Part shown: positions 7,901 through 59,256 of the stretch, piece after piece | Layout: every line of letters starts with the position of its first letter | How positions within the stretch are numbered: position 1 is the stretch's first letter | NCBI GenBank assembly: GCA_028023455.1 | Contig: JAQFVV010000002.1 | Coordinates: 12,958,001 to 13,022,000 of the forward strand | DNA: 64,000 nucleotides | Reading direction: 5' to 3' | From: Epiperipatus broadwayi | Lineage: Eukaryota > Animalia > Onychophora | The notes under the pieces: generated by a model | The model's input: only the letters and a program-made list of their open reading frames with translations | The model's database searches: none | Told to the model about the DNA's origin: nothing | Program-made: the position numbers and the translations under genes

Positions 7901-8361
7901 AATGTGATAATAAACGCAAGAAGTTTACGATAAAAATGTATTATGCAAGTTGAAAATAATTTTTAGTTGTCAAGGGAAAAAAAATGTTAAATTGTAAATA
8001 ATCTGTTTGCGGTGGAATTTTGCATTTTATATTATTATGAGAACAAGAAGAGCAGAAGTGGGTGGGGGCACGCTAACGCTAAAGTGTTTGAAACGATTTG
8101 GTTACCATAAAAATTAAAGCTCTTCCAAGATGAACTGGGTAAAAAAATTGTACTATGTTTTAAAAGAAAAAAAAAATTAACATAGTATTTGAATGTTGTT
8201 TAATGTTACAAATTAAGTAATTGTTATCAATATAGTGGAATAAATGAATTAAAACAGACAAAACTCTTTATACGTATTGCCACTCAGTGCAAGCCAGAGT
8301 AATCAATGGTTTCCAGAAGTCTTGTCCATAAAATCCCCATCTAATGCGTATTCATCCAATA

Positions 8362-8403
8362 TCCCCAGACTAGTTTCTGGCTTGTGGCCTTCATCAGTAA
8401 GGA
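8362..8403 (-). ncRNA. Type I hammerhead ribozyme, family A
   Basis: UCCUUA-CUGAUGA-A GGC CACAA GCC A-GAAA-CUAG-UC-UGGGGA. Confidence 0.75.
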
Positions 8404-8460
8404 ACCTTGAATCTGAGAGCACTGCATCTAGATCTTAGGATCTAATGCAACCCTCCAGCA

Positions 8461-8502
8461 GCCACACTGATGAAGGTCACAAGCCAGAAACTAGTCTGGC
8501 GA
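8461..8502 (+). ncRNA. Family A hammerhead, stem I disrupted by the inversion junction
   Basis: CUGAUGA-AGGUCACAAGCCA-GAAA-CUAG-UC-UGGCGA. The 5' strand of stem I is replaced by junction sequence. Confidence 0.6.
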
Positions 8503-11299
8503 TATTGGATGACTAGATGTGGATTTAATCCACAAGCCTTCTGGCATCCATTGATTACTCTGGCTTGCACTGAGTGGGCAATACGTATAGAGGGTTTTGC
8601 CTGTTTTAATAACAGTTAAGAGCAAGCATAAGAAATGGTGATCATGTGATGTTTATTGTAATAAATTAATGTATAAAAATTAATAATTTGTTTTATTTAC
8701 TTATCTGTGTAAATAATTGTTTTAATTTTTTATTTTATTAAACGTTATTAAATGACTATAATAAATGGGGATGAATAATAAGCTAGGAAAATATACATAT
8801 AAAAGTAATTATTACATTTATTATAAGAGGATAAAGTATGTTTGGGTTCAAATATAATATTGAAATGATATATTGTGATATTTAAATTTTGAACTTGTAT
8901 TTAGCTATAGATAATTCAATATAATTATAGTGGAGTCATATCTAATCCTGATTTGTAATTCTGTTTAGTTTATTATTAATAAGAAATGTAAGAAACAAGT
9001 ATAGATTGGAAATAAAAGGAAGGAAAATTGCATTGGTAAATTGGAAATAGGGAGTTAGTATCTGAGTTGTTTAGATAAAACAAATATAGGGATTTCTTAT
9101 TTTACGATGTACCCAAAATGTATTATATCAATATTTGGGATAATAGAATAAATTTTAAATTTAAATTAGTTCAGGATAAGATAACTTTCTTTTATTTTAA
9201 AATATATAGTATTTTTTTTTTTTATTTAGACACAGAGTTTAGTAGCAAGGCTATTACAAAACTGAATGTGAAATAAAAAATAAAAAACAATGGTTCAATA
9301 ATTATTAAATTACCATTTTATTGGCTTAAGGTAAAAAAAAAAGATCAAATGATAAATGTCATGAGATATAAAAAAAGATGAATATTTAATATTTCATAAT
9401 ATTAAAATAAGATTATTTTGTTTAAGAAAAAACAATAGTACATATTTTTTTAATCTTATATCTTTGAAATTATTAAGATTGTATTTGTTAATAGAATCTA
9501 TAAAGGGCAATGGGTATAAATAGGAATATATAAAATGGATTATATGTTATAGCATAATAAATGTATATAATTTTATTATCTAAAAAACTAAAGTTGAGTA
9601 TAACAATAAAACCATATCTTATTAAAATGGGGTATTTCATTTTAGTTATTGGGTAATTATAATTAAGGAGAAATACAAATGTTTGAATGTTGGGGTATTT
9701 TATTATATGTTATTATTATATAATATTTTTATGTTATTTGTTGAGTTATTTACTATTTTAAAAATAATTATTCAAATATTTTGTAAATAATATGTTAATA
9801 AAATTAATGTTTATAAATCGAACTAAGTATTTAGAGTTGCATTTCTTTGATTAGGGTCATCATCACTAATTGTACTATACACATTAATTAAAGTATATAA
9901 TTTGAAATTTAAATAAGAAATCACTTAAATATTAGCTAATGTATAACAATTATAAAAGAATAACAACTTGTACAATATATATTAATTTGTTATAAACTAT
10001 TATGATCACACAAGGCATCAATGAATTAGCATTTTCTTAATTAGTACACTATCTATAGAATTAAGTAAAATCCCTCTTTATATCTTATAGGTTAAATAAA
10101 TGGTTAATTAAAAATCAGTGATAATTCTGAGATCTTCTTATTATAATATTGTTATTATTATTAATTATAGCAATATAAGATTACTAATGATTGGAAATAA
10201 TAAATTTACAATAAAATGACATTATAAACTTGTTAATTAATTTACATTAAAGTTAATGATTATAGATGTTTATTATATTTATGTAGTATTATTGTTAGTC
10301 ATGGGAATATTTGGATACTTAATAAGGAGGAGTATCTCAGTATTCTTATGCCATTGAAAAAATATTTTGGTGTGGGTTTAATGTTAACGGGAATGCGATC
10401 TTGTTTAGTAGGATAGTGGACATCATAATTGCTGGCATAAATTAAAGATAATTTCAAAATAATAAAAGTATAAAATTGTATCTGGAGAAAATAAAAAGTA
10501 TAGCCTAATTTATGGACTTGTAATGTTTTCTAGGGGATCATCATTCTATTGGCAGGGTACAATATATAATATATGACTTTATTTTTTTAGGTTATATTTG
10601 ATATGTATGTGTAGAACGTGTGTGCATGAATGGGTATAGTATTAAAAAAATCTAATTAAAATATATTAAGTTTGTATTAAATAGACATAGCTGACGCTAA
10701 ATATGTATTTAAAAAATGATGACTCAACAGAATACAAGCAATCAATATAATGGAAAATGTGAATCAGATTTTGACAAAGATGAATAAGCAAATTATACAT
10801 TGATTTAAATATCAATATTTTTTTTTTTTTAAAAAAAAAAAACAACTTATCTGTTTTTGGAAATATTTTAATAATTTTTAAATATTGTTCAAAGTAAATA
10901 AAAACATTTTGTACAAATAATTTTATTTACAATATTTTTAAAATTATTATCATAAATATAAAAATCAATTTTAACACTTAAAAATATTAATATTTGCATT
11001 TTTATAAAAATAGAAATTGTTGATGAACATGTGAAATGAAAAAGAAAAATTGTTTGAAATATCAATTATTTAAAAAAATAAAATAAAGCAAAGAAAAATA
11101 GTAAGTGCACTCATTAACTTCGTTCAGCCAAAGCTGCTCCCCCCAAGTATGTAAAAAAAAAACAACTCTGAAAAACAAGAGTGAAATTTTAAAAAAAAAA
11201 CTAAAAAATAAGATTTAAATATATATAATAATTAATATTATATCTTTATTATTAAAAATTTATGGATTCTGACATAATTACTTGCTTAAAAATTCTTTT

Positions 11300-11690
11300 A
11301 ATACTAAGGATGTGGGGGGTGTAAGTGGAATTGTGTATAATATTTAGTATAAATTTGTTATCTTTTAGTCCTTTATACTTGGGAAGTATGCTTGTAGCAA
11401 TGAATCCATTAGTTATTATTTAGAGTTTATTTTCTTTGGCTCGTCTGGTTTAGTTGTGAATTTGGGGGTCATTTTGATTATTTTATTGATTAGTTTAGCT
11501 TTAAGCCTTTAATATTTATATACCAGTTTATAGTCATTTAGAGAAGTTAATACAGTGGCTTTCCGTTGAGTTCTATATCACAGTTCTAATTAACTTTGAA
11601 AGCTTTTGATTTCATTTATATGTAATTGGTGAATGAGTGTTTAAATATTACCGAATGTGATTACATTAATTTACTAATAAACTAAAGATC
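11300..11690 (-). pseudogene. Possible decayed PLE RT C-terminal (thumb) relic
   Basis: Minus-strand pieces LNTHSPITY (like LNS.HP.I.F), QRKAT (like YRKPT) and SILPKYKGL (like .LPY..GL), in order, across frameshifts. Confidence 0.3.
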
Positions 11691-11701
11691 AGCCTTTCAA
11701 T

Positions 11702-11863
11702 CTAACGTACATACGCTTTTTATGAATATTAATACTAATAAATGAATACCTTCACTTCCAACACAAGATAAAGTCTTTTCGACTAATGTACATGCGCTTT
11801 TTATGAATATTAATACTAATAAATGAATACCTTCACTTCCAACACAAGATAAAGTCTTTTCGA
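11702..11863. repeat. 81-bp tandem duplication
   Basis: Two near-identical copies starting 11702 and 11783. Explains the repeated 27-aa peptide in ORF 11697..11882. Confidence 0.9.
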
Positions 11864-13929
11864 AAGAATAGAATGAATCCATCTATTCTTTCAACCCAAA
11901 TGCTTATATATGGGCAAATCTTAGGTACTGGAAATAAAAGCATGAGGATAAACCACTCACTTTAAATTACTTTTTACTATGTCTGAATGAATGACGCCCA
12001 TGAAATTATCTAGAATTTACGAAACATCATATTGGGACTTGCAATGTTTTAACTAGCATTATTATACCACTTATATATCACTTTATATCCATTAATGATG
12101 CTACTTTTATTCTCGGACTTATATTCAGATGTTCTTTTTATTTACAATCATTCATTATCCTATAACAGTAATAAAACAAAATAATTTAATTTTTATTTTA
12201 AATAAAACACACACAAGAAATTGACATATATTAGCAATTTTTTTAATGCCGTCCATAAATCAACATAATATTACTCACACACATGGAAACAAGAGTTAAT
12301 GTCAATTTCTGAAATGGCAATAAATAAATACATATATATTATAGTAAATGTTTAAAACTATAAAAAAAACTCACTGATTAGATTATGTCAATGATGTTCA
12401 AGTAATCAAACATGATTTATCAGTAGATCATTGCATGTTTTTAGTATAATTTCTTTAAACACATTATGATAAAATATTGTATATAAAATATCTTGCTTGG
12501 TTTTTAAGTATTTAGGAAGTCAGAACTTTTTAATATAAATATTATTACATTAAAAAGTCTTGAAACGTTGAACCTTTTGTGATAATTCATTTTCTTTTAT
12601 AATCCCGATTTTAAAAATATTGCTAAGACAGCACAATATTAAATTTTGTTTCTACTTCATTATAGATATTCACATTTAGATATATTTAGCAAATATTGAA
12701 ATTAGATTCCAACATTGTATTTTTTTCCCCTCAGAATATGAATAGATTGAAAAATTACTCAACTAAAAAAAAAAAAAGTATTTCACATTAAGAAAAAGTT
12801 TAAATATCCTTGGACTATACTGCATAATATATTGATTGCCTCAAAAATATTAAAATATTAAGTGACACTTAGTGAAATAAAAAAAATATTAGAACTAGAG
12901 CAGAAGATGAAATGTTTTAAATGTTTCTCATAGATAGTGTGCTTTTTTCCGCTAGTTCTTTACAATATTACATATTGGAGTGCAGGTGTGAAAAAGCTTG
13001 TACTGTAGAGAAAAAATTTATAACTTTCATGCAGAATTTTAAAAAAAAAAAAAATTAAATGAGTAAACGGATACTAAAGAAAGATCCAATTTTCCTAAAA
13101 AAAAAAAACTAATAATAATAATAAAGGAAAGAAATAATTTTCAAGAAAATATCAAAAAGAAGAGTCACTGCTATTTTAGAAGACTGTTTCTGCTAAGACA
13201 AATAATAAAAACTATATTAAATAAAATACATAAAACTATTAAAGTCACAAGACTATTAATTGGAAAGAAAGGAATATAAATAAAAAAAAGTATTATTCAC
13301 TTTATGCAATGCATCTCTTTATTTATCACAATGGCAAAATATCTGACAGTTTCATTTATTTAACAATCTTTCTCTGATCCCCTTCTAATATTTACAAAAT
13401 GTTAAAGTAAAAAAATAGAGATTTAAAATATATCTGATAGTCTACTGAAAATAAGTGAGCTAACAGAACATCTAACTGCATAAATAATATTTTCTGTACT
13501 GTAATTTTTATTACACCACTCTCACACAAAGTAGACTGTTTTTAGCTGATTTTAATGCTTTATGGAGGATGTAAACATAGACCTATAACCAAATATAACT
13601 GGATAGTTTTAAACACAAATCAAATAAAAAAATTAATTATTCACAAAAAAATATCCATATCATTGACATAATCTTATGAATAAGAAATTAGTTTATTCTT
13701 GAAAAAAAATCTTAAAAAAATAGTAATAGAAACAAAATAAAGAAATTGATTGAGACTTAAAAGAAATGATTTTCACTGAAATTGACTCTTTTAATCAGAA
13801 ATGTGATCTAAAAATATATGTATATGTAGGAAAATATATATGGAAAATTAAAATAATTAACTTATAAATATGGGAATACTGGGGGAAAAAATAATGAAAA
13901 TGGAAATTGCAATACTTAAAAAAACTTAG

Positions 13930-14290
13930 TTTCTAGAAGTTTGGACAGTTAGATAAAGAAAGACAAAATAATTACAGGCATTTGAATGAAAGAAAAGTTA
14001 TATGATTAATATCAAAATAATACTTAAAGTGTTAGTTGAAAGTTATTTATTGAGGAAAATGAGTAAAAAAAAAAATTGAATTGAGTATATTTTTAATGAT
14101 AGAAAAAATATATTTGAGAAAACTATAAGAAAAAAAAAGTATAAAATTAATAGAAGTTATTCAAAAGGAAAATACTCTGGATTATTTAAAAAATAAAAGG
14201 AAGTGGCCTGGGATTATGTATGGAACTTACATAATGATAATTAGCAATGAAATTATATACAGATGATCATATATTAAAACAATTTTTGTA
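13930..14290 (+). pseudogene. Decayed CR1/L2-like RT relic
   Basis: Ordered pieces LEVWT, *IEYIFNDRK (like WI..FL.DR.Q), KGSGLG (like QGSVLG) and KLYTDD (like KLFADD). Confidence 0.45.
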
Positions 14291-14980
14291 ATTTTCTATG
14301 CATTTTTTGTTAATAATATACAAATCTCATTCTAATAGTTCTTAATATCACATGGAATGGGTATTAAATGATTTTAAATGTAAAATGTTTCATGAAATAC
14401 TTTTTAAAAAGTTTATGAAAGTGAAAATTGTTTTTTGAGATAACCAATTATGTAATTAACAATTTACAGAGATTATATTTTATGAGGGACAGCATTAATG
14501 TATCCTTTACTATCACATTATTAGATCTTAGATAAATAATGAGTTAAAAGGGAGTGCTTAAATGCTCTCATTCATTATAGTTCTTAAACTTATTTATATC
14601 AACTTAGAACATATAAGCAAGGTAATTTAAGGAGTTTATGATAAAACAACCTTTAAATAGTGTTCAATTTTTTAAAAAGGCTTTTCCAACAATCCTCCAA
14701 AGTGAAGAAGAAAGCATTACTTGATAGGGTAGCCAATTTAAGATTTTCCCCTTTATTTTTATCTTCCAGTTTATCTAAAAATCTTTGAAGATTTCATCTA
14801 ATCTAATTCTAAACTCCAGAATATCATTATGACAGACAGATGTACTAACCACTACATCAAAAGTATTCTTTAATTAATATATGGTTGTGAGAAAGAGTTT
14901 TCAGGCTTACAGTACTGATTCATATCTATTCATGGTCCTTTTTTAAAATTTTAAACAATTCTTTTTACTTAAACATTTTA

Positions 14981-15288
14981 TGTATAGGGGATTTGAATTC
15001 AGATTTTTAAGTACTCTCCATTTATACACACTATCTCATACAACTGATACACATGACCACACACATGTAGAAAAGATAAATAATCACCAATATACGTATT
15101 TTGTGCTAAACCAGCACTCATCAGTTGGTCCAGATTATATTCTCCCACACACATATATAATCAATGTTCAGTGTATCAGTTGTATAAGATAGTGTGGATA
15201 GATGGAGGGTACTTAAAAATCTGAGTTCAAATCCCCTATACTTACAATTAAGCTCCAGGTCTGTGAAGAGTGCCTGGTTTTCAAATAT
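14981..15288. mobile_element. Family C HHR element inserted as an asymmetric palindrome
   Basis: Arms 14982-15052 and 15171-15241. Spacer holds the minus-strand HHR. Tail 15242-15288. 12-bp TSD TTAAACATTTTA at 14969-14980 and 15289-15300. Confidence 0.85.
15086..15129 (-). ncRNA. Type I hammerhead ribozyme, family C (G12A)
   Basis: ACCAA-CUGAUGA-GUGCU GGUUU AGCAC-AAAA-UACGUA-UA-UUGGU. Confidence 0.75.
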
Positions 15289-15819
15289 TTAAACATTTTA
15301 CCTATTTTGAATAACCAGGCTCTTACTTATGTCCAAACATGAACATCTATAGTATCACATTTATTAGAGATAAACTAAAGATAAAACTCATTTTTCCAGA
15401 GTGATTAATCATTTGCAAACAAAAAAAAAAAATTGTGAAGTATTTTGAAAGCTAATACAAATAATTTATAAATGTCAAAAAATGTAAAGGTCGGATATAA
15501 ATATAGAATGAGTGCCTAAACTTTTTATCTCTATGTGAAAAAATTAGATATCACTACTGTATTTTAAAAGATTTCAAATTGATTTTAAAAATTTTATGAA
15601 TATCAAAAAATATTTGAGCTTTTAATATAGTGGGACTTTTCTAAAATCATTAACAAATTATTATATCATTACATGTGATCATAATTTCAAGCTTTAAAAT
15701 TTAAAAAAAAAACTGCATATATTAAAAAAATAAATATCATAAAACGAACTAAGCAACTTGAAAAGTATAAATAAAATACAACCATGGACAAAGAAAAAAA
15801 ATCTTGAATTGAATAAAAC

Positions 15820-16583
15820 TAGCAAGCATCACATGATCACATCTCCAATACTAGCACCTAATTGTTTATAAACAAAGCAAAGCAAAACTCCATATAGTAG
15901 TGCCACCTGTGCTAAACAGAGTAATCAATGGATGCCAGAAGGCTTGTGCATAAAATCCCTATCTAATGCCTACTCATCCAATATCCCCAGACTAGTTTCT
16001 GGCTTGTGGCCTTCGTCAGTGAGGAGCTTTGGATCTGAGAGCACTGCATCTAGATCTTAGGATCTAATGCAATCTTCTAGCAAACACCTTTTATCTCTAC
16101 TTAACTACAAAACTATGAGCATGAAATTGAAAACACAAAAAATATTTTCAATCTAAGCTCAATAGCTTATATAGTCATATGGGTCTGAACTCAGTTCAGC
16201 ACCCATACATTTTGGTGTCTTTGGCTCTTTAACAACCATAGCCACCACTACCCTATTAGGCAGGATTGGTGTTAAACCAGCAAGCGTCACATGATCACAT
16301 CTCCAATACTAGCATATAATTGTTTATAAACAAAGCAAAGGAAAACTCCATATAGTAGTCCCACCTGTGCTAAACAGAGTAATCAATGGATGCCAGAAGG
16401 CTTGTGCATAAAATCCTTATCTAATGCCTACTCATCCAATACAAGCCAGAAACTAGTCTGGGGATATTGGATGAGTAGGCATTAGATAGGGATTTTATGC
16501 ACAAGCCTTCTGGCATCCATTGATTACTCTGTTTAGCACAGGTGGCACTACTATATGGAGTTTTGCTTTGCTTTGTTTACATT
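15820..16583. mobile_element. Family A: full 458-nt monomer + partial tandem copy + inverted copy
   Basis: AGCAAGC..CACATGATCAC at 15821 and 16279 (period 458). 16466-16579 is the reverse complement of 16327-16440. TSD AATAAAAC at 15812-15819 and 16584-16591. Confidence 0.85.
15984..16025 (-). ncRNA. Type I hammerhead ribozyme, family A
   Basis: UCCUCA-CUGACGA-A GGC CACAA GCC A-GAAA-CUAG-UC-UGGGGA; 6-bp stem I, GUC site. Confidence 0.8.
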
Positions 16584-17449
16584 AATAAAACAGAAAAACA
16601 GATGTAATTACTAAAACCCAAAAGCATAGTCTAGTAGTAAAAAGAATATAACAAAGGTTTATTAAATACTTTAGAATAATGTTATTTACTAATATCAAGA
16701 AATTTAGATATAGCAATTTATCTATTAAGTTAAGAGATATCAATAATATATATAATGGCTTGATCAATCACTTGGAAAATCAAGTTACATTTAACACAGA
16801 AGTGATAGGCTATACATAACAGACCCACTCAGTTAATTAAGCAGAATTTGTTGTTTACTTTCTTCAGATGAGAAATTATCCAAAAAGATTTCACTCTACC
16901 ACTTTCATCTTACACTAAATCTCATAAAATTCTTAATGTGTAAAATATAATATATAAAATATCCTCATTGAGTTAACTTTAAAATATTTTAAATAAGTGC
17001 TACTAAAATACTAAATAAATTTTGAAACTTTAAAATGTACATGCTTTTAAATTTGTGAGAATTAGCACATTATTTCTATAAATAAAAAAATATTAATAAG
17101 CAACATCCTAATTAATGATGTCAATAAACTTATTATATTTATGATTTACATTCAAGTTACATGAATAAAGATCAATTTTTTATATGTTTTAAAATTGTCA
17201 AGTCATCTCAGTTTCTTCCAAAAAGCTAGCCTATATCTAACAATATGTGTCATCCATCATTTTGTTTTTTTCTAAACACTCCATTCAAGTTAGTATGGAT
17301 ATGGTTTTATCTATTTGCCATGGATTAAAGTTTGATTTACTGCAAGACTCATTCTCTTTTTAAATTTTTGTATTATTTAAATAAATAATATTTTTCTGCT
17401 ACATTCAATACAGTCCACAATTATTTTGATGACTGACAGGACTTTGAAT

Positions 17450-21049: not shown

Positions 21050-21090
21050 ATATATATATATAGTATATATATATATATATATATATATAT

Positions 21091-21123: not shown

Positions 21124-21126
<3 letters not shown>

Positions 21127-23560: not shown

Positions 23561-23838
23561 TCAGTCATCTCCTGCTGCCATGGCAAATAAATCATGAGAC
23601 AGCCATTTCCCATCTATGGGGTGGTAGGATAACTTTATCTCAGTAATGATAAGCATTTATAGCTTTATATATGCCCACACATACATCGATTACAGTCTAG
23701 ATAAATGACAAAGACTAATCAGATCCCGAATCAAAACATATATGAATTATTTCAATTTTAAACAGTCAAGCCAACAACATACACCTAATAAATATAATTT
23801 ATCCAAACTTCAAACACTTTTAGCAAACTTTATTTGTA

Positions 23839-23884
23839 CATACATCTACGTTTCAACTGACCTGCAGTCTTCTTCAGAGCTATG
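23839..23884 (-). ncRNA. Type I hammerhead ribozyme, family B
   Basis: CAUAGCU-CUGAAGA-A-GACUG CAGGU CAGUU-GAAA-CG-UA-GAUGUAUG. Confidence 0.65.
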
Positions 23885-23988
23885 ATATAATGAACAAAAT
23901 AAAAAAACAACTATATAATAACACCATAAAAAAAATTTTAAACAATAAAAAAAAAAAAACTAAAAACAACATAAAATATATATATTAA

Positions 23989-24734
23989 CCTTTTAACCGC
24001 TAATTATATTATTGGTTGTATGAGGTAAAAATCAAATCTTTTAATTGGCCAACTCACAAACTGAAGACAAAGCCTATTGTTAAAACATATTCGCCTATAA
24101 TATTAAATTCAACTCAGATACGTTTATAAAAAGTATATTACTAATTTTTCAGGTTATGAAGAGAACGAATGTTCTTTCAAAAATAAATTGCTATTTATTT
24201 ATTCTAAAATATTCAATTTCGGCAACATAAAAGCTATAATATAAACAAAAAGGTCGACTTTTACGTTATAGAAAAGTAAATATTTCTTTTAAATATTTCT
24301 TTAATATTTTTACTAAAATCTTCAATATTTTTCGAAAATAATTTTGTTTTTTTAGTTTTTTTTTTAAAAAACTAGTTTAATTTCTGAAATTATATTTTTT
24401 TAATACTTAAAATTGCATTCGAAATGAAAATCTCAGCGTTTTTCTTTATTTTCTTTGATCAGGCAGTTTCTTTGTTCTTTCCAGCCAATCAGAATGTCTT
24501 TTTCGGCTGAGAGCATGCTAAGAACCAATAACAAGTAATGTTCTTTCTTTGTTTAGGTTTAAATGCGTTTTTTTTTATTTTTTACTTGTAAAATAAATCG
24601 GAAGAGGGCACCATCTTACAGAACTTTTAAAAACCTATTCAAAACCTATCAAACGAATTTTTTAGCATAAGAACTGGCAGAGTTAGAGTGACGTCAGATG
24701 TCTACGAGGAGCCTCGTAGGAGGCGGGAAAAGGG
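23989..24734. mobile_element. Non-autonomous piggyBac-type element (746 bp)
   Basis: TTAA at 23985-23988 and 24735-24738. Ends CCTTTTAACCGC... and ...GCGGGAAAAGGG. The opposite palindrome arm shows the empty site with a single TTAA (about 26292). No ORF. Confidence 0.9.
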
Positions 24735-26398
24735 TTAAAAACCTGAAATAAATAATCAAACCCAAATAAAACAATTAATATAAAATAAAATGTACTACAT
24801 AAATGAAAAATAAATATAAATTATACATGTGTATTCTTAACTTTATACATATATACATTCAAGGACAACTATTAATCTAAATATTATCTATTTTATTATT
24901 ATTAACAATCTACTAATTATCTATATTCTTCATAAACTTAAACTTTATGATTAGTAACTAAAATTCTTTTAATTTTAAATCATATTTATTATTTTCTTAC
25001 TCATTCTTTTTTTAAAATTAATATTTTATATTTATTATTGCTGAATATTTAAAACCTATAAACTTTATAATCTTTACACTTACTAAGGCTATTCTGATCT
25101 TCAAAATAAAATAATGAAAAATCGTTTTTTTTTCAAAAAATTATCTTATACCCTAGCTCCCTCTATTACATATTATTTAAACTAAATATATATCCGCTAC
25201 AACTCTTTATTTATATTTTTACACTTTAACTTTTATTATATAATACTCATAAATTTATATTATACTTCTTTATATGTTTTTATATATATAAACCCTACAA
25301 CTTTATTTGCATATATATTTTTTTATTTTATATATTTTAACTTTTATCATTATTTTTATATAATTCTTATAAAAAAAATTTATACTGTTTTATATGTAAA
25401 TATTATGCTAAGTTTATTAATTTATTTATTTATTATTATTTTTTATTATTTAATATCTATAAATATACCCAAATTTATACTCGTATTTAACCTAACCATT
25501 TTTATCATCCCCAACTTATTTATTAGCAATTATCTGGTTAGGTTAAATACGAGTATAAATTTGGGTATATTTATAGATATTAAATAATAAAAAATAATAA
25601 TAAATAAATAAATTAATAAACTTAGCATAATATTTACATATAAAATAGTATAAAAAATTTTTATAAGAATTATATAAAAATAATGATAAAAGTTAAAATA
25701 TATAAAATAAAAAAATATATATGCAAATAAAGTTGTAGGGTTTATATATATAAAAACATATAAAGAAGTATAATATAAATTTATGAGTATTATATAATAA
25801 AAGTTAAAGTGTAAAAATATAAATAAAGAGTTGTAGTGGATATATATTTAGTTTAAATAATATGTAATAGAGGGAGCTAGGGTATAAGATAATTTTTTGA
25901 AAAAAACGATTTTTCATTATTTTATTTTGAAGATCAGAATAACCTTAGTAAGTGTAACGATTATAAAGTTTATAGGTTTTAAATATTCAGCAATAATAAA
26001 TATAAAATATTAATTTTAAAAGAAGAATGAGTAAGAAAATAATAAATATGATTTAAAATTAAAAGAATTTTAGTTACTAATCATAAAGTTTAAGTTTATG
26101 AAGAATACAGATAATTAGTAGATTGTTAATAATAATAAAATAGATAATATTTAGATTAATAGTTGTCCTTGAATGTATATATGTATAAAGTTAAGAATAC
26201 ACATGTATAATTTATATTTATTTTTCATTTATGTAGTACATTTTATTTTATATTAATTGTTTTATTTGGGTTTGATTATTTATTTCAGGTTTTTAATATA
26301 TATATTTTATGTTGTTTTTAGTTGTTGTTTTTTTTATTGTTTAAAAAAATTTTTATGGTGTTATTATATAGTTGTTTTTTTTATTTTGTTCATTATAT

Positions 26399-26444
26399 CA
26401 TAGCTCTGAAGAAGACTGCAGGTCAGTCGAAACGTAGGTGTATG
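26399..26444 (+). ncRNA. Type I hammerhead ribozyme, family B (best-preserved copy)
   Basis: CAUAGCU-CUGAAGA-A-GACUG CAGGU CAGUC-GAAA-CG-UA-GGUGUAUG; palindromic stem III ACGU, GUA site. Confidence 0.8.
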
Positions 26445-26813
26445 TACAAATAAAGTTTGCTAAAAGTGTTTGAAGTTTGGATAAATTATATTTATATGAT
26501 ATTACGGCAAACATAAAGAAAAGTGTGATTTTGGTAATACACCTAATATTTATATTAATAACAGATCATCAACACTTATAGCATAATTATGGTTTTTCAC
26601 ACGACCATCCAATCACTCTTCATGTCTAATATTAAGCACAAATAAAAAATTTTGTTAAGAATAAAAAAAATATTTTATATCACTTCTCACTTTTCTTTTT
26701 TAAATTTACGTAAGCATTTATACTTCAATGGGATCAAAATCATTTTCCCTTCTTTCCTTTAAACATTTTAAAAACATAAATAAATAAAAATATAATCTAG
26801 TGGTTAAACATGC

Positions 26814-29816: not shown

Positions 29817-30093
29817 TTACATATCATACAGATTTATAACTTTCTTAAACACTTTATCAATACTATATTTTATATCAAAACTTTATTGTAACAATTTCAA
29901 CTGTCCTGCAGTCATCATCAGAGCTAAAATATGTAAATATACAATTATACAATCAATAAATTTTATACACATATTCATATATATAATTAATCTGATGATG
30001 ACTGCAGAACATCAAAACTGTTAGAATAAAGTTTTGATATAAAAAATAGTATTGTTAAGTGTTTAAGAAAGTTGTAAATGGTATGATATGTAA
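29817..30093. mobile_element. Family B-related diverged palindrome with decayed HHRs in both arms
   Basis: Arms 29817-29922 and 29991-30093. CUGAUGA-U-GACUGCAG on both strands; GAAA kept only in the minus copy. TSD uncertain (TATAATGTTTTATT at 29641 and 30135). Confidence 0.75.
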
Positions 30094-37326: not shown

Positions 37327-37605
37327 AAAATTTCTTTCCACTTCTCCTTATTTGCATTGATTAATTATATATATATAATATACCATATAGTCCTTAATTA
37401 ACACTTTTACAATGAAATTTTAACATATAATTTATTTCTTTTTGCTTACAGTTTCAACTGCCCTGCAGTCATCATCAGATCTATAGTAAAGTTTAAAAGA
37501 GCTCTGATGATGACTGCAGAGCAGTTGAAACTGTAAGCAAGAAGAAATAAATATGTTAAAATTGCATTGTAAAATTGTTAATTAAGGAGTATATGGTATA
37601 TTATA
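37327..37605. mobile_element. Family B-related asymmetric palindrome
   Basis: Arms 37374-37479 and 37503-37605. Tail 37327-37373 on the left. 13-bp TSD CATTCTAAATATT at 37314-37326 and 37606-37618. Confidence 0.85.
37501..37538 (+). ncRNA. Type I hammerhead ribozyme, family B
   Basis: GCU-CUGAUGA-U-GACUGC AGA GCAGUU-GAAA-CUG-UA-AGC. The mirror copy at 37444-37481 (-) has a broken stem I. Confidence 0.7.
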
Positions 37606-40119
37606 CATTCTAAATATTCACTACTCAATTTTGATGAGTATTTATTAAGCTTTTTTTTTTCATGCAACTTTGTAATATAACCATTTTTGAGCTGCTTTCA
37701 GATTTATTATAGTAACAATATGTTTTATAATTACAATCATAGCTATGAAAACTGTAGTATTACATTGTTATAATTAAAATAATTACAATTGTTTCAGTAT
37801 AAACAGAAAGTAAGTACCAGTACAATATTAATAATATAAAAGCAAATAAATTCAAAAAAACATTGCTAATTATTTCTTTTCAAAAATTAAATGAAAAAAA
37901 AGTTGCATAAAATTGGAATCATAAAAGGTTAAGTAAAATCAGATAAAAAAATAATGTAAATAATTATATGAAATTTTGATTATAATATAAATCAGTTAAA
38001 AGAATCTAGAGTCGGAAACCAATTGGATTTTTATTCTTTTTTGAAGCAAAAAAATTAAACTTACTTATTTTTAATAATAATAAGTTATTTATTTATATTT
38101 TATAAATTTTTTTTTTGACCATTTAAATATATTCTTTTATATTTTGGCTTATATATATATATACTAGAAATTTAAATAACTGTATAATGTTTTTAACTTT
38201 ATCTGTGGGAAGAAATAACCATGACAACTAATGTCATCATATCAATAATCATGTTGAAACTTAGTATTAGATGCTAACAATAAATGAAAAGTTATACATG
38301 ACTAAGTCACAATTCTATCATTGATGAAGAAACGAAAAAATCAATTGGAAATAATGCTTCAAATTTTAAGATGTATATTAAAAGAAAGGTTAAATAATGA
38401 TTAATTTAGAAGTGAAAAGGCACTTTTCAATTATGTCTGATAACCAACAGGACTGATTTCTAAGTTTAATAGATTGAGATTTTAATAGAATAAAAAGGAA
38501 AAAATAATTATGTTTGATGACTCAAAAATATGGTTGTATGCTAAGACTTAATAGATATTCGGTTTAATTCTGTTAATGGTATTGTAATATATAAAAGTAA
38601 TGAATAGGATTTCATTATCTAATGGCTTATTGAAACCTTATTTAAAAATAATTATGTGGAAAAAAGCTGAACTTAATATTGAGGAAGATGTTAGTATATC
38701 ATAAGTCGTGCAATTATTAATTGGATTACAAATATAAATTTGATTTGTGCTATTTCAGAAAAAAACAAAGTGCTTGAAAAATTATTCTTTTAAAAAAAAG
38801 GAATTATATTTTTCAGAGAGACATATGCAATCTATTATATATTTTTTGACATTTATTTTTAAAATTATTTTAAAAGGATCTGTTTAAAATGGATAAGATA
38901 CATATGGTCACTTTATGACTAACTCCAATTAATTAGAAACCTTTTGCCTATACATAATTATTTCAAAAATATAAGTAAAGTGGATTATAAGTGGATGAAA
39001 TATTGATTTATACATTAAATTTGGGGTAAAACTTTTATTTAGTTAGTTATCTTTTAAATAATATGCAGAAACAATGATTTTTAGCTAATTCTCTGAATAT
39101 TATCTTTTTTCAATTCAAATATTGTCATCAATAAACTATTCAAGTTTTAATATATTTTGTTCTTCATTTTGTGTGTGTGTGTGTTATTTTTTTATCTATT
39201 TTTAATTTCTAATTGCATTTAAATATGTAAACCAAGTTTGTGTGAATTATAATTAAATAGACCAGTTTATGGATTTTGCATTCAAAGACAAAAGTAACGA
39301 TCTTATACATATAACAGTCACTTTTTATTTCTTTATATTATTCAACTAATATCCTATAATTAAAAAAAAACCCTAAAGTTTTGAATCTAAACTAATTTTC
39401 ATTTGCATAACTTTATAGATTTGATAGAGACTTCTTATGTCAGCTGTAGGTTTTTTTCTACCTATGACTAAGAAGGTTAACACCGACAACAATATTATAT
39501 GACTTTTTCATGTGCTTACTCATATGCTCCAAGTGCAATTATCTTCAGTTTAATCTAAATCCATTTACTATAATCTTGACTAATCAATGAATACTAGGTA
39601 ATACAGTGTCAAAAAATTCTCATCTCAAGAGTCAAAAGCAGTTTTTGGCTTTTGCCTTCTACACTGAAAAATATGATTTAACTCTGGATCTAATGTTTGT
39701 GTATATCTAAAAATCATCTTTGCACTAATGAAGGCAAATCTAGAAGTTGATCTACGATAGGAATATTATTGCATTATATAAATCATTGACCATTGATACT
39801 CAAGGTTTCAGGATATTGCTGTAGAGTAAGTAGAAGATAAATGCTTTTAAAAGTTTATGAATAAACATATAATAAAGTTAAATGAATTTTACTTTTTTCA
39901 AAAATGTTTTTTTAGTCAAATTTAAAATATATTCTAATCTTTAATAACAACATATATTTGTAAATATATATTGAACTATTTCCATTATCTAGTTTAATTG
40001 TCAAATGTTTTTCAAAATTCAAATTTTATTCAAGTAATAACACACGGGTTTGTATGCTATATAACATTTCAAGTTGTATTATTCACTCTCATTTTTAGAT
40101 GTTTGCTCAACCAATAATA

Positions 40120-45357: not shown

Positions 45358-47304
45358 ATTTACATAGTAAAGCTAAAAGCAATAATGTATACAATTCTAT
45401 ACTTTTTGAATATGAGAAGAAAACTGATCATTTATTGAAATCTGCATAAAGAAAAATAATGAAAAATGTAAAATAAAAGGTTAGCATATAATTAATTTTA
45501 CAAATTCTATTATTATAAGAACCAGTAACATTTTTAAAACAAGAACTGATGTTTCAATTTAGGTAGGGTATGTAATTAATTCATAAAATTCACTTAATGT
45601 TAGAGCCAATAAAATTCCTCTTAACAAAATTTAATGTTCCAATTTAAGCTTACTGCAATTAAATAACAATATCACAAAATATCAAATAAAGAGAATAAAT
45701 GACCAGCTTGTTGAATATATGGATATATTAGTGTTTCATGGATTGGTTTGTATAGCCATTCGAAAATTTATCTTTAGGGTACTATTACTATTATTCTTTT
45801 CACCTCGGAGTTGGAATGACCATAGTCATTTGCAAATACTGATGATGATAATAACTGTAAATAAATACTTTTAATTTCTTTTAGTGTTTTTTTTAATCCA
45901 GTTTTTTTATAAAAAAAACTGTTTTGTAAATCTTATACTATTTTAATTTTAAAATTTAATAAAAGTCTGTGTACATTTAGAAATCAATCTTTTTTTTTAA
46001 GCTTAGATAAAAAGTTGTTGCCAAATGTTTTTTTTATATAAGCAATGTATGCAAATACATTATATAAATGGTGAATTAGTAAAATGTGAATTGCAAGAAT
46101 TTTTGTAAAATAAAATTCTTGTAGTTAAAAGATAATTTAAAATAATATAATTCTCATCATTAAGTTGATAATAACTCTGATATTTTAATAAATAGAATTT
46201 ATAATATTCTCAAGAATGGTCAGGTTCTTTGGAGCATAATAGAATATTTCTGTCTTATTGCTGGATATCTTATTGTTGTAGTTTCCCCCTCACCAACATA
46301 TTTCTAAATATTACAAAATTTTTAATAAATTCTATAAGTTACAATGCAAACGAAGTCAAATGACTTCAATTTGGATAAACAATCAAAAATGTCCTAATTT
46401 TTATTAAATGATGTAATAATGTATATTGAATTATTATAATGTAGAGATACATTTTTTAAAAATTTAATATGGACATGGATTAAATAATGTATTACTGCTA
46501 TGTATAAATGTATTGCACATATCATTTATATATAGATAGATATATCAGTTTACATTATCTAAATTGCAAGGGCTTTTTAAACTTTGTGATGTAGCTCTAA
46601 AATTGAGACACTAGCTAACTAATGTTAAGAAGATAGTTTCTAATTACTTTATTTATCTTTAAGTAATATATATTAAGGCTATAACCTTAAAACTATGCAC
46701 CTAAAATGTGACAGTAGGGACCTCTACAAATCTAAACACAAGATTAACGACTTTAAAAGACAAGACAAGAGCGGCATCATCTCTCATCTTAGACCTAATT
46801 TCTAAATATATAGGTGAATCTAAAGCATTTTGATTTGAGAGTGTGAAGCTATTAACTACACTGATTAAGTCCACAATTTCTATACAAACAAACATATGCG
46901 AAATCTTTCGATTTACAACGAGTCAGTATGAAGTTCTTATAATTAGAAATCTTTTAAAACAATTTAAAGTTGTAATTAATAATTTGTACAGCACATATTC
47001 ATTACTAACTAATATATATTGAGGTTATTGTGGAAGTGAACTTAAAATGACAATATTGTATTTACTTCAACAAAAATCAATAAATTAAAAATTAACTGTG
47101 ATAAAACACAGTTGCTGAAGCTTTAAACATAAAATTATAACAATAACATTGAGTGCTTTCGGGGGACTTAAGCCTCCATAATCATAGTTCAATACAAAAT
47201 AAATACAAAATATAAACACTTATTCACAAGCAAAATGCGTATCTCAAATAAAATGTAAACTAAATCTAAATAAATAAATAAAATACAATATAAATAAATA
47301 AATA

Positions 47305-47813
47305 TTATAACGTCCATATTTTAGAAATATTAAAACAAGAATCCTTTCTATTAATAGCATTGGGATTACCAGCTACAAAACAAGCTTCTTTAATCTTACG
47401 CTTTACGTCATTCTTCTCCGTACACACTAATTTTGCCTCTACTGGTTGACATAAGTGTCCAGCTTTATTTTCATATTCCACAAACACTGAATTTCCCAAA
47501 AATTTAGTTTTAGTACGATGATATAAATATTTATGCTGTGAAACTCTATTTAAAATATTGGTTTTAGTTTCACCATAATAAATACAACCACAATCTTTAT
47601 GAGGACAAGAAACACTATAAACCACATGCTGAGTTAAATTAGATTCAATTTTAAATTTTGAATTGTTAATCAATCTATTCGTATTTGGAGGTGAATGAAA
47701 AATTACTTGAAAATCTGGAGATAACTTATTAATTAACTGTTTTGCAATAGAATGAATAAATGGTAAAACTATACGAGGTTTTTCAATCTTGTCAGGTGTA
47801 AACTGCAAATTAT
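47305..47813 (-). CDS. 5'-truncated PLE ORF: GIY-YIG endonuclease C-terminus (open frame, no native start)
   Basis: VVYSVSCPHKDCGCIYYGETKTNILNRVSQH ... RKIKEACFV..NPNAINRKD matches the PLE GIY-YIG pattern. The ORF-track N-terminus (to 47940) is only antisense spacer. Confidence 0.85.
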
Positions 47814-48423
47814 TTGAGGCACATAGGAAAGAAAATCTTATTTGTTTTATTGAGGACTTAGTCAAACTTGGACATAAACGTTCAATTATCAACAATAGAG
47901 TTGTAAAATTTTTACATAATTTGCAGTTTAAACCTGACAAGATTGAAAAACCTCGTATAGTTTTACCATTTATTCATTCTATTGCAAAACAGTTAATTAA
48001 CAAGTTATCTCCAGATTTTCAAGTAATTTTTCATTCATCTCCAAATATGAATAGATTGATTAACAATTCAAAATTTAAAATTGAATCTAATTTAACTCAG
48101 CATGTGATTTATAGTGTTTCTTGTCCTCATAAAGATTGTGGTTGTATTTATTATGGTGAAATTAAAACCAATATTTTAAATAGAGTTTCACAGCATAAAT
48201 TTTTATATCATCTACTAAAACTAAATTTTTGGGAAATTCAGTGTTTGTGGAACATGAAAATAAGGCTGGACACTTATGTCAACCAGTAGAGGCAAAATTA
48301 GTGTGTACGGAGAAGAATGACGTAAAGCGTAAGATTAAAGAAGCTTGTTTTATAGCTGGTAATCCCAATGCTATTAATAGAAAGGATTCTTGTTTTAATA
48401 TTTCTAAAATATTGACGTTATAA
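47814..48423 (+). pseudogene. PLE thumb + GIY-YIG fragment with a 1-nt frameshift
   Basis: ENLICFIEDLVKLGHKRSII (thumb-like), then the same endonuclease. CATCTACT versus CATCGTACT in the other arm gives a frameshift near 48212, splitting ORFs 47789..48289 and 48229..48423. Confidence 0.85.
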
Positions 48424-48538
48424 TATTTATTTATTTATATTGTATTTTATTTATTTATTTAGATTTAGTTTACATTTTATTTGAGATACGCATTTTGCTT
48501 GTAAATAAGTGTTTATATTTTGTATTTATTTTGTATTG

Positions 48539-48581
48539 AGCTATGATTATGGAGGCTTAAGTCCCCCGAAAGCGCTCAGCT
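48539..48581 (+). ncRNA. Hammerhead variant with A3-U8 core pair in the PLE 3' region (family E)
   Basis: AGCU-AUGAUUA-U-GGAGGC UUAA GUCCCCC-GAAA-GCGC-UC-AGCU, about 115 nt after the ORF stop. The mirror copy at 47147-47189 (-) is damaged in stems I and III. Confidence 0.7.
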
Positions 48582-50577
48582 TTATTGTTATAATTTTTAT
48601 GTTTAAAGCTTCAGCAACTGTGTTTTATCACAGTTAATTTTTAATATTGTATTAAAACTTTCTAGTTGTTTTTTTTATTATTAAGAAATAGAAAAATAAA
48701 ACATAGATTAAAAATTATATTGACTAATTTCTGATTATCAATAAAACTTTAGAGCATTGAACGAAAAGTTTGAGTAAAATGCCCATCATCATTTAATTTA
48801 TGTTGCGTCCAGGTTTCTGTAAATAGTTTCTCTGGCGCTAGTTGTTATTCTGGTTTTTTTTTTTGTTGTTTATATAAAATCTAATAATGTTTAACTTAAT
48901 CTAATTCTATTCACTTTTAAAAATGTCATATGCAATAATTAATTGTAAGATGATACTTTTCTAATTACTAATATTTTTCCCCCCTCTCTTTGATAAATAA
49001 TAGTGTATTTATAAAATAAAAAATAATTGTTTGTTTAAAGTAACTTTATATAAAAAGGCTATTTTCAAGAGTCTCAACTTCATAAAAAGATCAGTGCAAC
49101 CCAAATAGACTAGAAAGATAAAGACATATTTCTTAGAAATAATACAGTAGTCGCATCAGTACTATCAATTTTGGAAGTGCAAAAAATATTCTTCTATTAT
49201 ATAGCTAAATGGCAATTGCTATTTTGAAATAAAAATACTTTAACGTAATCTTAATCAGCAACGATCATGTGACTATTCCCACTTTATATTGCACTATTTG
49301 TTTCAAAAATAACAATTATAATTTTTTTAGTAGAAAGACCATGATTTTAATATCTTTTGCATTTTCCAAAATAGACTGTATATAATGTAGCACTGGTATA
49401 AGGGTATTATCTATAAGGAATATGTGTTTTATGATCCGAGCCCGACTAATGAAGAAATGTAGTAAGAGAATTTATTTTTTTCTATACTGTATGACTCTAA
49501 GAAACAGCCTTTTATAGAAGGCTATTTTGTCTTTGTAGCACAATTAACATTATTAAATAATATTCTTCCAACTTATATATGTTTTAGTGTATAAACCTCT
49601 ATTTTATAAATATATATGCCTTGCAAGTTTTAAATAAAAAGATCTTTTTCTTTTTTCTTTTTTTGTTAATAACACTGCTTTATTTATTCCAAACAAAATT
49701 AATAGGCTTATCTTAGAGTTTTAAAAATCCTAATGTTGAATCTCAATTTGAAACACTTCTTCATCCCACTTGAGTCCTTGAAAGTGTCACAGCAATCTGT
49801 AGAATTTTAACATCTCAAGAAAGACTTTAAAATTTATCTAGAGCATCTGTTAATATTGTCTTTCCTATAAGTGTCTGTAGAATTTATTTTGCGTTTTATT
49901 CTCTGTTTTATAAAAATGCGTTAATTTTTTTTGGTAAAAAGTAAATAATTTGTTAATAAAATAAGAATATGAATTTCTTTAAAAAATATGAAACATATTT
50001 AACAATTATAAAAATCTCAAACGATAATTAGTGTTTGTGAGATGCTTTTGGAAGCATTTAAACACAGCGTTTTATTTATAATTGGACAGTTTCTTATTTG
50101 ATAAAGATAATATTTACTTGAATCACATCTTATAAACAATATTACTTCATAATGCAAAATTTTACAAAATATTGTAATGAACAAAAAATAATATTTCAGA
50201 ACATTTACGCACAGATATTTTTATTATGTTTGCTTACATACACAACATTTTATAGGCATGAAAACATGAGAGTATAAAAATATTTTTATCATTATTACTT
50301 ACTAAGTGGCATTGACTCCTAACTAAACATTTTATTTTAATGGCATATCATCTGATTGGATTTTAGCTCCTCAGTGGGTATTCATTTATTCTGGTGATGG
50401 AAGCTATATGTTTTATTCTTGAGAAAGTTAATCAAATCATCTTTCTAAGCAATATATATTGTTAAATAAATAAATTATTTTCAAATATGATTAACATAAG
50501 ATAATATTTCTTCTTAGTATATATATATATATATTCATATTATTAGCAATAGCAAATTCTATGATAATATTTGAAGT

Positions 50578-50578
<1 letters not shown>

Positions 50579-50656
<78 letters not shown>

Positions 50657-51055
50657 GTAGGTAGGTAGGTAGGTAGGTAGGTAGGTAGGTAGGTAGGTAG
50701 GTAGGTAGGTAGGTAGGTAGGTAGGTAGGTAGGTAGGTAGGTAGGTAGGTAGGTAGGTAGGTAGGTAGGTAGGTAGGTAGGTAGGTAGGTAGGTAGGTAG
50801 GTAGGTAGGTAGGTAGGTAGGTAGGTAGGTAGGTAGGTAGGTAGGTAGGTAGGTAGGTAGGTAGGTAGGTAGGTAGGTAGGTAGGTAGGTAGGTAGGTAG
50901 GTAGGTAGGTAGGTAGGTAGGTAGGTAGGTAGGTAGGTAGGTAGGTAGGTAGGTAGGTAGGTAGGTAGGTAGGTAGGTGGGTGGGTGGATGGATGGAGGG
51001 AGAGAGGGATGGACGGATAGATAGACAATCCGACAGACAGACAACTAGTCAGACA
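50579..51055. repeat. Compound tetranucleotide microsatellite: (AGAT)n, (AGGT)n, then degenerate GGAT/AGAC
   Basis: Direct reading. Accounts for the LPTY-repeat ORFs. Confidence 0.97.
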
Positions 51056-57488: not shown

Positions 57489-57581
57489 GTCAAGCATTGG
57501 TGGTCGAGAGGTCAGCGACGGTTGCTTTACAAGCAGTTGTCCCGAGTTAGCGGATTCGCTTCCCGGCTGATGCTATGACAC
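57489..57581 (+). pseudogene. Retroposed tRNA-Gly(TCC)-derived sequence, anticodon now TAC
   Basis: Cloverleaf 57494-57573: acceptor GCATTGG/CTGATGC, D arm GTCG/CGAC, anticodon arm GTTGC-TTTACAA-GCAGT, T region CCGAG..CCCGG with an insertion. Perfect 19-bp TSD ATAAGAATAAAAGCAAATT at 57470-57488 and 57582-57600. Confidence 0.75.
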
Positions 57582-57697
57582 ATAAGAATAAAAGCAAATT
57601 CATCAAAAAAAACCTTATATTCAACATATTAGTGCACAATTGGGTAATAAATTCTATCATGATTAGTTTAAAAAAAGGAGAAATACCAATATAAATA

Positions 57698-57905
57698 GGA
57701 ATTATTTAAACGGAAGTCAATCTCCGATAATGTGCTATTTCTTAAATATTATAAATCTATGCGCACTCTCCCGTTGGTAAGAGTTTAAAAAACTTAAGTG
57801 AATCACTTACGTTTTTTAAACTTTTACGTGCGGGAGAGTGCACTAGATGTATAATATTTAAGAAATAGCATATTATCGGAGATTGACTTCCGTTTGAATA
57901 ATTTC
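57698..57905. mobile_element. Near-perfect 208-bp palindrome (MITE-like)
   Basis: AAACGGAAGTCAATCTCCGATAATGTGCTATTTCTTAAATATTATA versus TATAATATTTAAGAAATAGCATATTATCGGAGATTGACTTCCGTTT. Centre near 57801. Possible TA TSD. Confidence 0.8.
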
Positions 57906-58864
57906 AAAGTTATCAGCGCTTTATAATAATAGGTTTACAATATAAATATGTTATTTATTATAAAAAGAAAAATGTGTCAGTTCTTTATACATTAAAATAA
58001 AAGTGATATAAGTCAAGACAGCTTACACTAGAATATATTAAAAAAGAAAAGTAGTGGAAACATAAAGGAGCTTCCATTGGAATATTTTAAAAAATATATT
58101 ATCCTTCATTAAAGGAATAAACATTATAAAAGTGAATTTGATTAAGTATTTTAATGATAGCTGCCTATACTTAAAATATTAATAGTTTAATGGATCCAAA
58201 AAAGGGCAAACTGGTAAAGAAGTATACCAAAACCTGTAATATTATATTTAACAAGAAGAAAGTTTAATATTCATTTATGTCATTTTGAAAAATAATTCAG
58301 TAATATAATATATAGCTGTATTTATGTTTGCATTGTTATCAAAACTAAAGCAATATACTTTGGGGGAAATATTATTGATAGACTAATAATTTATATGCAT
58401 ATACAAATTGTAAAATTTATTTATTTTATTCATTTATGCCTATAGATGAATAAAGTAATTTCTACTCAATTATGATCATTATTGGTACCACTTTTTATGA
58501 TTTAAAGTTTGAATAATATTATCATCTAAGTTCTATTCCTGGAATTTAGAGTTATGGAATTATTTTCACTATTTATATACATATAATTTGTTGGTTTTTC
58601 TTAATCATTTGAATTGTCTATTAAAAGAATTTGGATTTAAAAATAGATTTGCATTTGATCTCTCTTTTTATTATGTCCTCGTGTTATAAAAGTGTTTTTT
58701 TTTTTAATTTTCATAATCCAAATATTTAGTTTACATCCAAATTATATCTCACCTACTATATTAGCTGATTTTTTTCCTACTGATTGCATAAATTACCAAT
58801 AAATTGTTAACTGCTGAAGGCTTAAAAATCATTATTTTCATAATTTTACATATGGTCTAAAGTA

Positions 58865-59256
58865 GGCAAAACTCACTATATATATTGCCACACACAGCAA
58901 GCTAGAGTAATCAATGGATGCCAGAAGGCTTATGCATAAAATCCCCATTTAGTACCTATTGATCCAATATCCCCAGACTAGTTTCTGGCTTATGGTCTTC
59001 GTCAGTGAGGAGCCTTGGATCTGAGAGCACTGCACCTAGATCTTAGGATCTAATGCAACCCTCCAGAAACCATCTTTTATCTCCATTTAACTACAAAACT
59101 ATGAGTCTTAAACTGAAAACACCTTAATGTTTTCAATCCAAGCCCATTAGCTTATACAGTCATATGGTGATGCTGTGTGTGACAATATATATAGTGAGTT
59201 TTGCCTGTTTTAACAACAGTTATACACAAGCATAAGAGGTGGTAGTCATGTGATGT
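58865..59256. mobile_element. Family A asymmetric palindrome
   Basis: Arms 58864-58899 and 59171-59206. Long spacer continues the minus copy. Tail 59207-59256. 9-bp TSD TCTAAAGTA at 58856-58864 and 59257-59265. Confidence 0.85.
58970..59011 (-). ncRNA. Type I hammerhead ribozyme, family A (stem II mutated)
   Basis: UCCUCA-CUGACGA-AGACCAUAAGCCA-GAAA-CUAG-UC-UGGGGA. Confidence 0.65.

Follow-up and report, generated by a model that had tools for sequence, protein, structure and literature searches.

Endonuclease-positive (EN+) Penelope-like elements (PLEs) leave a characteristic signature where they insert. An inverted, 5'-truncated copy lies beside the main copy, the target duplication is of variable length and a tail of 30-40 bp is present at one end only (PMC8557442, PMC3846280). 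The integration of PLEs has so far only been outlined. Working in vitro with the purified Poseidon PLE of Anolis, Frangieh et al. (2024, PMC11167929) found that both target strands are cut and extended, that reverse transcription begins from two adjacent sites inside a multi-copy RNA and that the stretch between these sites constitutes the tail; the preferred cut of this enzyme is at ATT. Second-strand synthesis lies beyond the published in vitro work. Here we describe palindromic insertions in a window of 64,000 nucleotides, positions 12958001-13022000 of contig JAQFVV010000002.1 in the 5.6-Gb assembly of the onychophoran Epiperipatus broadwayi (GCA_028023455.1), together with related copies elsewhere in this genome. 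We conclude that these sites are most probably insertions of PLEs, one family being coding and several others being short non-coding passengers with hammerhead-like motifs, and that they were probably made by double priming.

An inverted segment is also the outcome of L1 twin priming, in a model reportedly due to Ostertag and Kazazian in 2001, according to which the second target strand primes a second cDNA, leaving an inverted segment, a single target duplication and microhomology at the inversion junction. The second primer is said to anneal inside the same RNA; the two segments reportedly do not overlap and only one of them possesses the 3' end. A search of the literature found no relevant joining of Penelope with the term twin priming. 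Another described system is that of the metazoan retrozymes of the kind without long terminal repeats (non-LTR; Cervera and de la Pena 2020, PMC7229834). Their target duplications are long, and PLEs are probably responsible for their mobility.

Results

An initial annotation of the window had listed seven palindromic insertions, at 8250, 14981, 15820, 23791, 37327, 47063 and 58865, each described as two divergent copies with their 3' ends outward. All seven were recovered by an inverted-repeat scan and self-BLAST of the window, and every one is head-to-head: the - strand carries the left arm and the + strand the right arm, the 5' parts being central and the 3' ends outward. Three markers reveal the orientation of the arms: hammerhead-like boxes (CUGAnGA...GAAA) that read outward in both arms, the tandem continuation of the repeat in family A and, in family C, an outward reading frame with a GIY-YIG-like motif in both arms. 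The one-sided tails, announced as 41-51 nt in six cases and 22 nt in one, were measured as 47, 45, 49, 41, 44, 21 and 50 nt, in the order of the sites given above. An eighth insertion, at 57700 (57687-57948), was absent from the list and has the same geometry: the duplication CAATATAAATA (57687-57697 and 57938-57948) encloses a palindrome at 57700-57903 and a tail at 57904-57937. With this site included, a tail of 21-50 nt is present on one arm only at all eight sites in the window.

The most informative data come from family A, a 458-nt non-coding unit whose copies are 97-99% alike and often tandem, in arrays of up to 3.4 units. A genome search with this unit returned 30 loci, 28 of them distinct, and inverted composites comprise 24 of these 28; in 23 both outer ends lie inside the locus. 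Without exception these 23 composites have one tail-less end, at unit position 397-420 (mostly 404-408), and one tailed end, at 444-464. Some of the tailed ends continue for 1-6 nt into the following unit of the tandem, and both starts are therefore internal on a longer or multimeric template. The strictness of this pairing may be appreciated by comparison with family B, a unit of ~195 nt in which a 45-nt tail is present or not. Solo copies of family B stop at either end site, roughly half at each, so that an independent choice of ends would give many pairs of the same type. The absence of tailed/tailed pairs is robust and that of tail-less/tail-less pairs less so, because the sampling favours complete tailed units. 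The flanks of three loci (L028:2682-3360, L003:2897-3158 and L019:2560-3078) also contain older double insertions of the family A type, which share ~80-90% identity with the young unit. Each has one tailed and one tail-less end, and the tail-less arm is the longer in two of them and the shorter in one.

Both kinds of end bear the marks expected of a primer. We defined microhomology as those boundary bases that fit both target and template beyond the start point. Over 41 ends it averaged 2.02 nt, compared with 0.98 nt when ends and targets were re-paired, and none of 20000 resamples reached the observed value; the initial annotation had proposed a check of this kind, and the outcome is in its favour. 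The microhomology was alike in both start zones. On the nicked strand after the cut, just outside the duplication, GT was found at 17 of 42 boundaries against an expectation of 4.5% (p ~1e-10), on either side and irrespective of which arm is tailed. The corresponding figure in the window is 4 of 16 boundaries. The junctions between the arms, on the other hand, are scattered along the family A unit, with 24 different junctions in the young loci, and show an overlap of 0-4 nt or a few unmatched bases. Scattered junctions with short overlap or filler fit the joining of two separately made cDNAs. The divergence between the arms of one insertion (2.4%) equals that between loci (2.6%) and carries no information on whether the two arms had a common template.

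The initial annotation reported target duplications of 8-13 bp, imperfect at 8250, and this description was upheld. Six of the seven sites have exact flanking direct repeats of this length and the repeat at 8250 is an imperfect 9-mer (AATAAATGA vs AATAAATTA). When the same generous search was applied to 400 random position pairs, direct repeats of at least 8, 9 and 11 bp arose with probabilities of 0.11, 0.03 and 0.01, and none of 12 bp or more was found. As a whole, the window set is far beyond chance, and the repeats at 15820 (8 bp only), 58865 (7 of the 9 bases coincide with the end of the element itself, the family boundary being 58858) and 8250 (imperfect) are weak when taken singly. Among the family A composites, 21 of 23 possess direct repeats of 8-16 bp, with a median of 13, which is the variable length that characterizes PLE target duplications. 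The outer junctions of 14981 and 15820 are spanned by short-read contigs from the same sample at single-copy depth. A search for empty sites in whole-genome runs from one sample found the insertions at 14981 and 15820 present, with no skipping joint among those listed, and there is no paralogous empty site for 15820, its flank at 15310-15819 being unique in the assembly.

A palindromic shape with flanking duplications might equally be presented by fold-back DNA transposons or miniature inverted-repeat transposable elements (MITEs), and palindromes are hard to assemble, which could make the sites artefacts. Both explanations strike us as very improbable. The length of the duplication varies from 8 to 16 bp and one end is asymmetric; the unit of which the arms are tandem multimers or 5'-truncated copies is also found alone; and family C has a reading frame resembling that of a retroelement nuclease. 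The outer junctions are confirmed by the independent short-read contigs, and the geometry repeats at 23 loci on different contigs.

The individual sites in the window may now be compared with respect to the arm that reaches further 5' at the junction. According to the initial annotation this is the tail-less arm, the extra stretch being a spacer that belongs to that copy. We decided ownership of the spacer with genome copies as references, and at five sites the tail-less arm owns it or is longer. The first of these, 8250 (8239-8668), is a member of an old subfamily of family A, with duplications at 8239-8247 and 8660-8668, a tail-less arm from 8248 to ~8462 (-), a tailed arm at ~8463-8611 (+) and the tail at 8612-8658. 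At 14981 (14969-15300, family B), the 12-bp duplication TTAAACATTTTA (14969-14980 and 15289-15300) flanks a full-length tail-less arm at 14982-15176 (-) and a 5'-truncated arm at 15171-15243 (+), followed by its tail at 15244-15288. At 23791 (23779-26548, family E), with the 12-bp duplication ATACACCTAATA (23779-23790 and 26537-26548), the tail-less arm occupies 23791-25534 (-), including a 36-nt spacer (25499-25534), and the tailed arm 25535-26495 (+), with the tail at 26496-26536. The fourth, 47063 (47052-48653), derives from family C, a coding PLE with a GIY-YIG-like reading frame, of which it comprises the 3' part. Its 11-bp duplication, AATATTGTATT (47052-47062 and 48643-48653), shares 3 bases with the element end; the tail (47063-47083) and tailed arm (47084-47813, -) are followed by a tail-less arm at 47814-48645 (+) that includes a 102-nt spacer. 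The last, 58865 (58856-59265), belongs to a subfamily of family A; between the 9-bp direct repeats TCTAAAGTA (58856-58864 and 59257-59265) lie a tail-less arm at 58858-59167 (-), a short arm at 59171-59206 (+) and the tail at 59207-59256.

The remaining two sites behave differently. At 37327 (37314-37618, family E-like), flanked by the 13-bp duplication CATTCTAAATATT (37314-37326 and 37606-37618), the tail (37327-37370) and tailed arm (37371-37497, -) precede a tail-less arm at 37500-37605 (+), and it is the tailed arm that owns the spacer, since single-arm copies run through it from that side (query 1-171 vs 174-279). At 15820 (15812-16591), a young family A insertion with the 8-bp duplication AATAAAAC (15812-15819 and 16584-16591), the tailed side extends over 15820-16441 (-), or 1.36 tandem units, with the tail at 15820-15868, and the tail-less arm over 16441-16579 (+), with 4 extra bases (16580-16583). 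Here the tail-less arm is further 5' by 24 nt in the local register only, and the tailed side measures 624 nt vs 139 nt. The initial annotation had itself named a larger sample as the test of its rule, and there the rule failed to reach significance: in family A the tail-less arm is further 5' by phase in 15 of 23 composites (p = 0.21) and longer in 8 of 23. Ownership amounts to at most a weak trend, in a biased sample.

These results bear on two explanations of the layout. The first is an ordered process, the stricter version put forward in the initial annotation, in which the tail-less cDNA, primed internally, always outreaches its tailed partner in the 5' direction. It agrees with five of the seven sites in the window and, of the three unselected old family A copies in the flanks, with two. 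We nevertheless judge it improbable, given its failure at 37327, the lengths of the two sides at 15820 and the proportions just cited for family A. The second supposes that a single priming event is followed by self-priming, the 3' end of the cDNA folding back to copy itself and the far end then joining the other side of the target. Self-priming has been inferred for rotifer Penelope elements from palindromes at inverted junctions (PMC3846280), and both the short junction overlaps and the 57700 family, in which a palindromic centre is common to both arms, speak for it. It requires, however, that the tailed arm be the longer and own the spacer, and the tail-less arm is the longer at 8250, 14981, 23791, 47063 and 58865 and in 8 of the 23 family A composites. 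That either arm can be longer excludes the simple fold-back copying of a single cDNA as a general route. Moreover, the tail-less ends cluster within 5 nt and have primer-like microhomology, a pattern to be expected if they are initiation sites and not if joining were random. As a general mechanism self-priming is already contradicted by these observations, and we accord it little likelihood.

Two further features were observed in this part of the sequence. The left arm of the 23791 palindrome is interrupted at 23990-24733 by an unrelated 744-bp insertion at TTAA, which is duplicated on either side. Its ends, CCTTTTAACCGC and GCGGGAAAAGGG, look like piggyBac-type inverted ends, and the uninterrupted right arm of the palindrome (~26280-26300) provides the empty site. 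At 29822-30098 there is another palindrome, family E-like, with arms ~81% alike and decayed hammerhead boxes, in which no target duplication or one-sided tail was detectable.

Entire insertions together with their flanks were also used as queries against the genome, with only the 40 best candidates scored in each search and sister copies judged by the coordinates and identities in the search tables. For 8250, all 40 best matches are colinear with the interval from 8248 to ~8658, at 80-86% identity, through the junction and the tail, and end where the insertion ends; the flanks are not common to them, and the family boundaries fall at query positions 87 and 497 in 40 of 40. Some 35 of the 40 best copies of 37327 span query 1-279, at least 15 copies of 58865 span 58858-59257, and at least 25 whole-palindrome copies of 57700 were found. 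On these alignments 8250, 37327, 58865 and 57700 each appear to belong to a family that repeats the palindrome in full, with its junction and its tail. Sister copies across the junction are few at the other sites: 7 for 14981, 2 for 15820 (94-96% identity) and 1 for 47063 among the 40 best, and none for 23791 among the top matches. Since palindromes spread as units, the seven sites do not represent seven independent priming events. The initial annotation had treated them as separate; at least 8250, 37327 and 58865 are, by this comparison, probably copies from whole-palindrome families, and 14981, 47063 and 15820 have few sisters.

It is probable, on this basis, that the palindromes in the window were mostly copied from palindromic elements that already existed, and that their geometry goes back to a few founder events. 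The whole-palindrome copies of 8250, 37327, 58865 and 57700 favour such a history, as do the few sisters of 14981, 15820 and 47063. This judgement covers the 40 best candidates of each search, and the 24 different junctions in the young family A loci imply that new formation is frequent as well. The ends of the whole-palindrome families are sharp, one boundary being tail-less and the other tailed, which suggests that the junction may be inherited and the ends made anew by double priming.

The families differ in what they encode. Copies of families C and E are, like those of family A, 97-99% alike. In family C, an open reading frame at 47305-47940 (-) matches the GIY-YIG profile PF01541 weakly (E = 0.0033, 18.1 bits, under the 22.6-bit cut-off). 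The nearest atlas clusters to this frame are eukaryotic proteins with GIY-YIG and HTH_animal domains (score 0.96), and a comparison with solved structures gave no match. The motif of family E, read by eye, consists of CUGAnGA, one bulged base, a helix II of 5-6 bp and then GAAAC, and that of family A is GAAA-CUAG-UC, with a helix III of 1 bp and a palindromic loop. Both fit the minimal descriptors of Penelope-type hammerheads given by Cervera and de la Pena (PMC4209133), and we call them putative ribozymes from a reading of the motifs alone. Retrozymes are described as having low G+C and a type I hammerhead in tandemly repeated units of 150-450 bp, and family A agrees with this in its tandem 458-nt unit and in the G+C content of ~25% across the window. 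Folding of the tail regions as RNA was no better than that of shuffled sequences (z = -0.9 for family A and -0.2 for family B). We also considered, and rejected, the tail as a terminal redundancy with a second copy at the 5' end, as the short hits at unit 409-460 and 1-52 proved to be search-window cut-offs.

Families A and B are extremely abundant, with a word depth ~five orders of magnitude above that of single-copy flanks in short-read contigs from the source sample. Two small runs guessed to be RNA, one labelled as the same organism and one as another, were queried with window positions 15003-15336 and 15838-16672; families A and B were present at depths of thousands and the unique flanks almost absent. 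Families A and B are either expressed or consist of abundant DNA common to related species, and these runs fit both. Searched at a lax threshold, the family A palindrome at 16401-16505 has Rfam matches to mir-3927-like and other microRNA precursors (54 bits, gathering score 90). Palindromes of retroelements mimic microRNA hairpins in this respect and could mislead annotation. Elsewhere in the window, two overlapping reading frames of 161 aa lie on the - strand at 50543-51044, in a region with a strong skew of G over C (0.34 over 50-52 kb); a similar skew is seen at 6-10 kb.

Discussion

We suggest the following course of events. A PLE enzyme, consisting of a reverse transcriptase and a GIY-YIG nuclease, would nick both target strands ~13 bp apart, often just before GT. 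With 2-5 nt of microhomology as a guide, each target 3' end would then prime a cDNA on the element RNA; one would start in an inner zone (404-408 of the family A unit) and the other ~40-55 nt further 3' (444-464). The use of two start zones would yield one tail-less and one tailed outer end. The two inward-growing cDNAs would be connected at no fixed position, overlapping by 0-4 nt or with a few bases of filler between them, leaving a palindrome within a single target duplication. A finished palindrome may later serve as template in its entirety, founding a palindromic family with the same junction and one-sided tail. The two-nick priming proposed in the initial annotation fits the present data and those of PMC11167929; its further statement, that the outer start is the RNA's 3' terminus, was not shown to hold. 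The data themselves show the anatomy, the pair of end zones, the whole-palindrome families, the duplicated targets and, at the ends, microhomology and a GT bias; we infer the priming of the two ends on RNA within one event and the way in which entire palindromes are copied.

Several points weigh against this account. No PLE reverse transcriptase is encoded within the window, where only 4 open reading frames reach 130 aa, and an Rfam hammerhead search over 8200-16700, both at the gathering score and at E <= 10, found none. Because no empty site was found, the target duplications are deduced from the flanking repeats alone. The ends and duplications that entered the microhomology test were read by eye and not by an independent pipeline, and the family A search, with its preference for loci that have a complete tailed unit, may under-sample tail-less/tail-less composites. 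In the in vitro study, homology between the start sites and the DNA that was cut was not seen, and neither start site had a strand preference (PMC11167929). Finally, the sharp 5' end of the copied whole palindromes is left unexplained by the mechanism.

A more specific version of the double-priming mechanism can be advanced only tentatively, and we think it rather doubtful. Double insertions might always pair both start zones, one per nick, with a single complex, probably a dimer that cuts N^GT ~13 bp apart, starting both cDNAs on one stretch of RNA either side of the tail. Palindromes would then perpetuate themselves: a cDNA that reads through the junction would be complementary to the cDNA from the other nick, and their annealing would rebuild the palindrome with fresh sharp ends. 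If true, this would explain hairpin-shaped non-coding families of thousands of copies.

The present genome holds very large young families, and from their insertions both ends of every event can be read. If catalogued in full, they could reveal whether the use of the start sites is coupled, how the cDNAs are joined and the cutting preference of the nuclease. The capacity of palindromic products to give rise to new families also matters for the annotation of repeats, as such families resemble fold-back transposons or microRNA hairpins.

As a whole, the sites display the known Penelope-type insertion signature in new families. The initial annotation likened the layout to that of Drosophila virilis Penelope, for which it is indeed known, and it is general to PLEs (PMC8557442, PMC3846280). 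Partial tandems (pseudo-long terminal repeats, pseudo-LTRs) with an inverted 5'-truncated copy and 3' ends outward are present at the seven listed window sites and at 23 family A loci, and a short tail at one end only at the eight window sites and in 23 of 23 family A composites. Like those of published PLEs, the insertions combine a direct copy or partial tandem with an adjacent copy that is inverted and 5'-truncated, and they have a variable duplication, a tail at one end and hammerhead-like motifs in the repeats. They are unlike them in that the carriers are mostly short and non-coding, the tails measure 21-50 nt and several palindromes have turned into families of their own. The inverted two-armed form and the one-sided tail likewise set them apart from retrozymes as described (PMC7229834). 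The difference from L1 twin priming that the initial annotation pointed out is real, since both arms begin in the 3' region of the element and overlap over tens to hundreds of nt. With Anolis Poseidon they would share the cutting and extension of both strands, two adjacent internal starts whose spacing equals the tail, and a multi-copy RNA template. The double-priming reading is thus well supported and was largely anticipated by that work (PMC11167929). Unlike Poseidon, the onychophoran elements use one site of each kind in each double insertion, with 2-5 nt of microhomology and a bias for GT after the nick. Modest new leads are the whole-palindrome families, the strict combination of one tailed with one tail-less end, the microhomology and the preference for GT.

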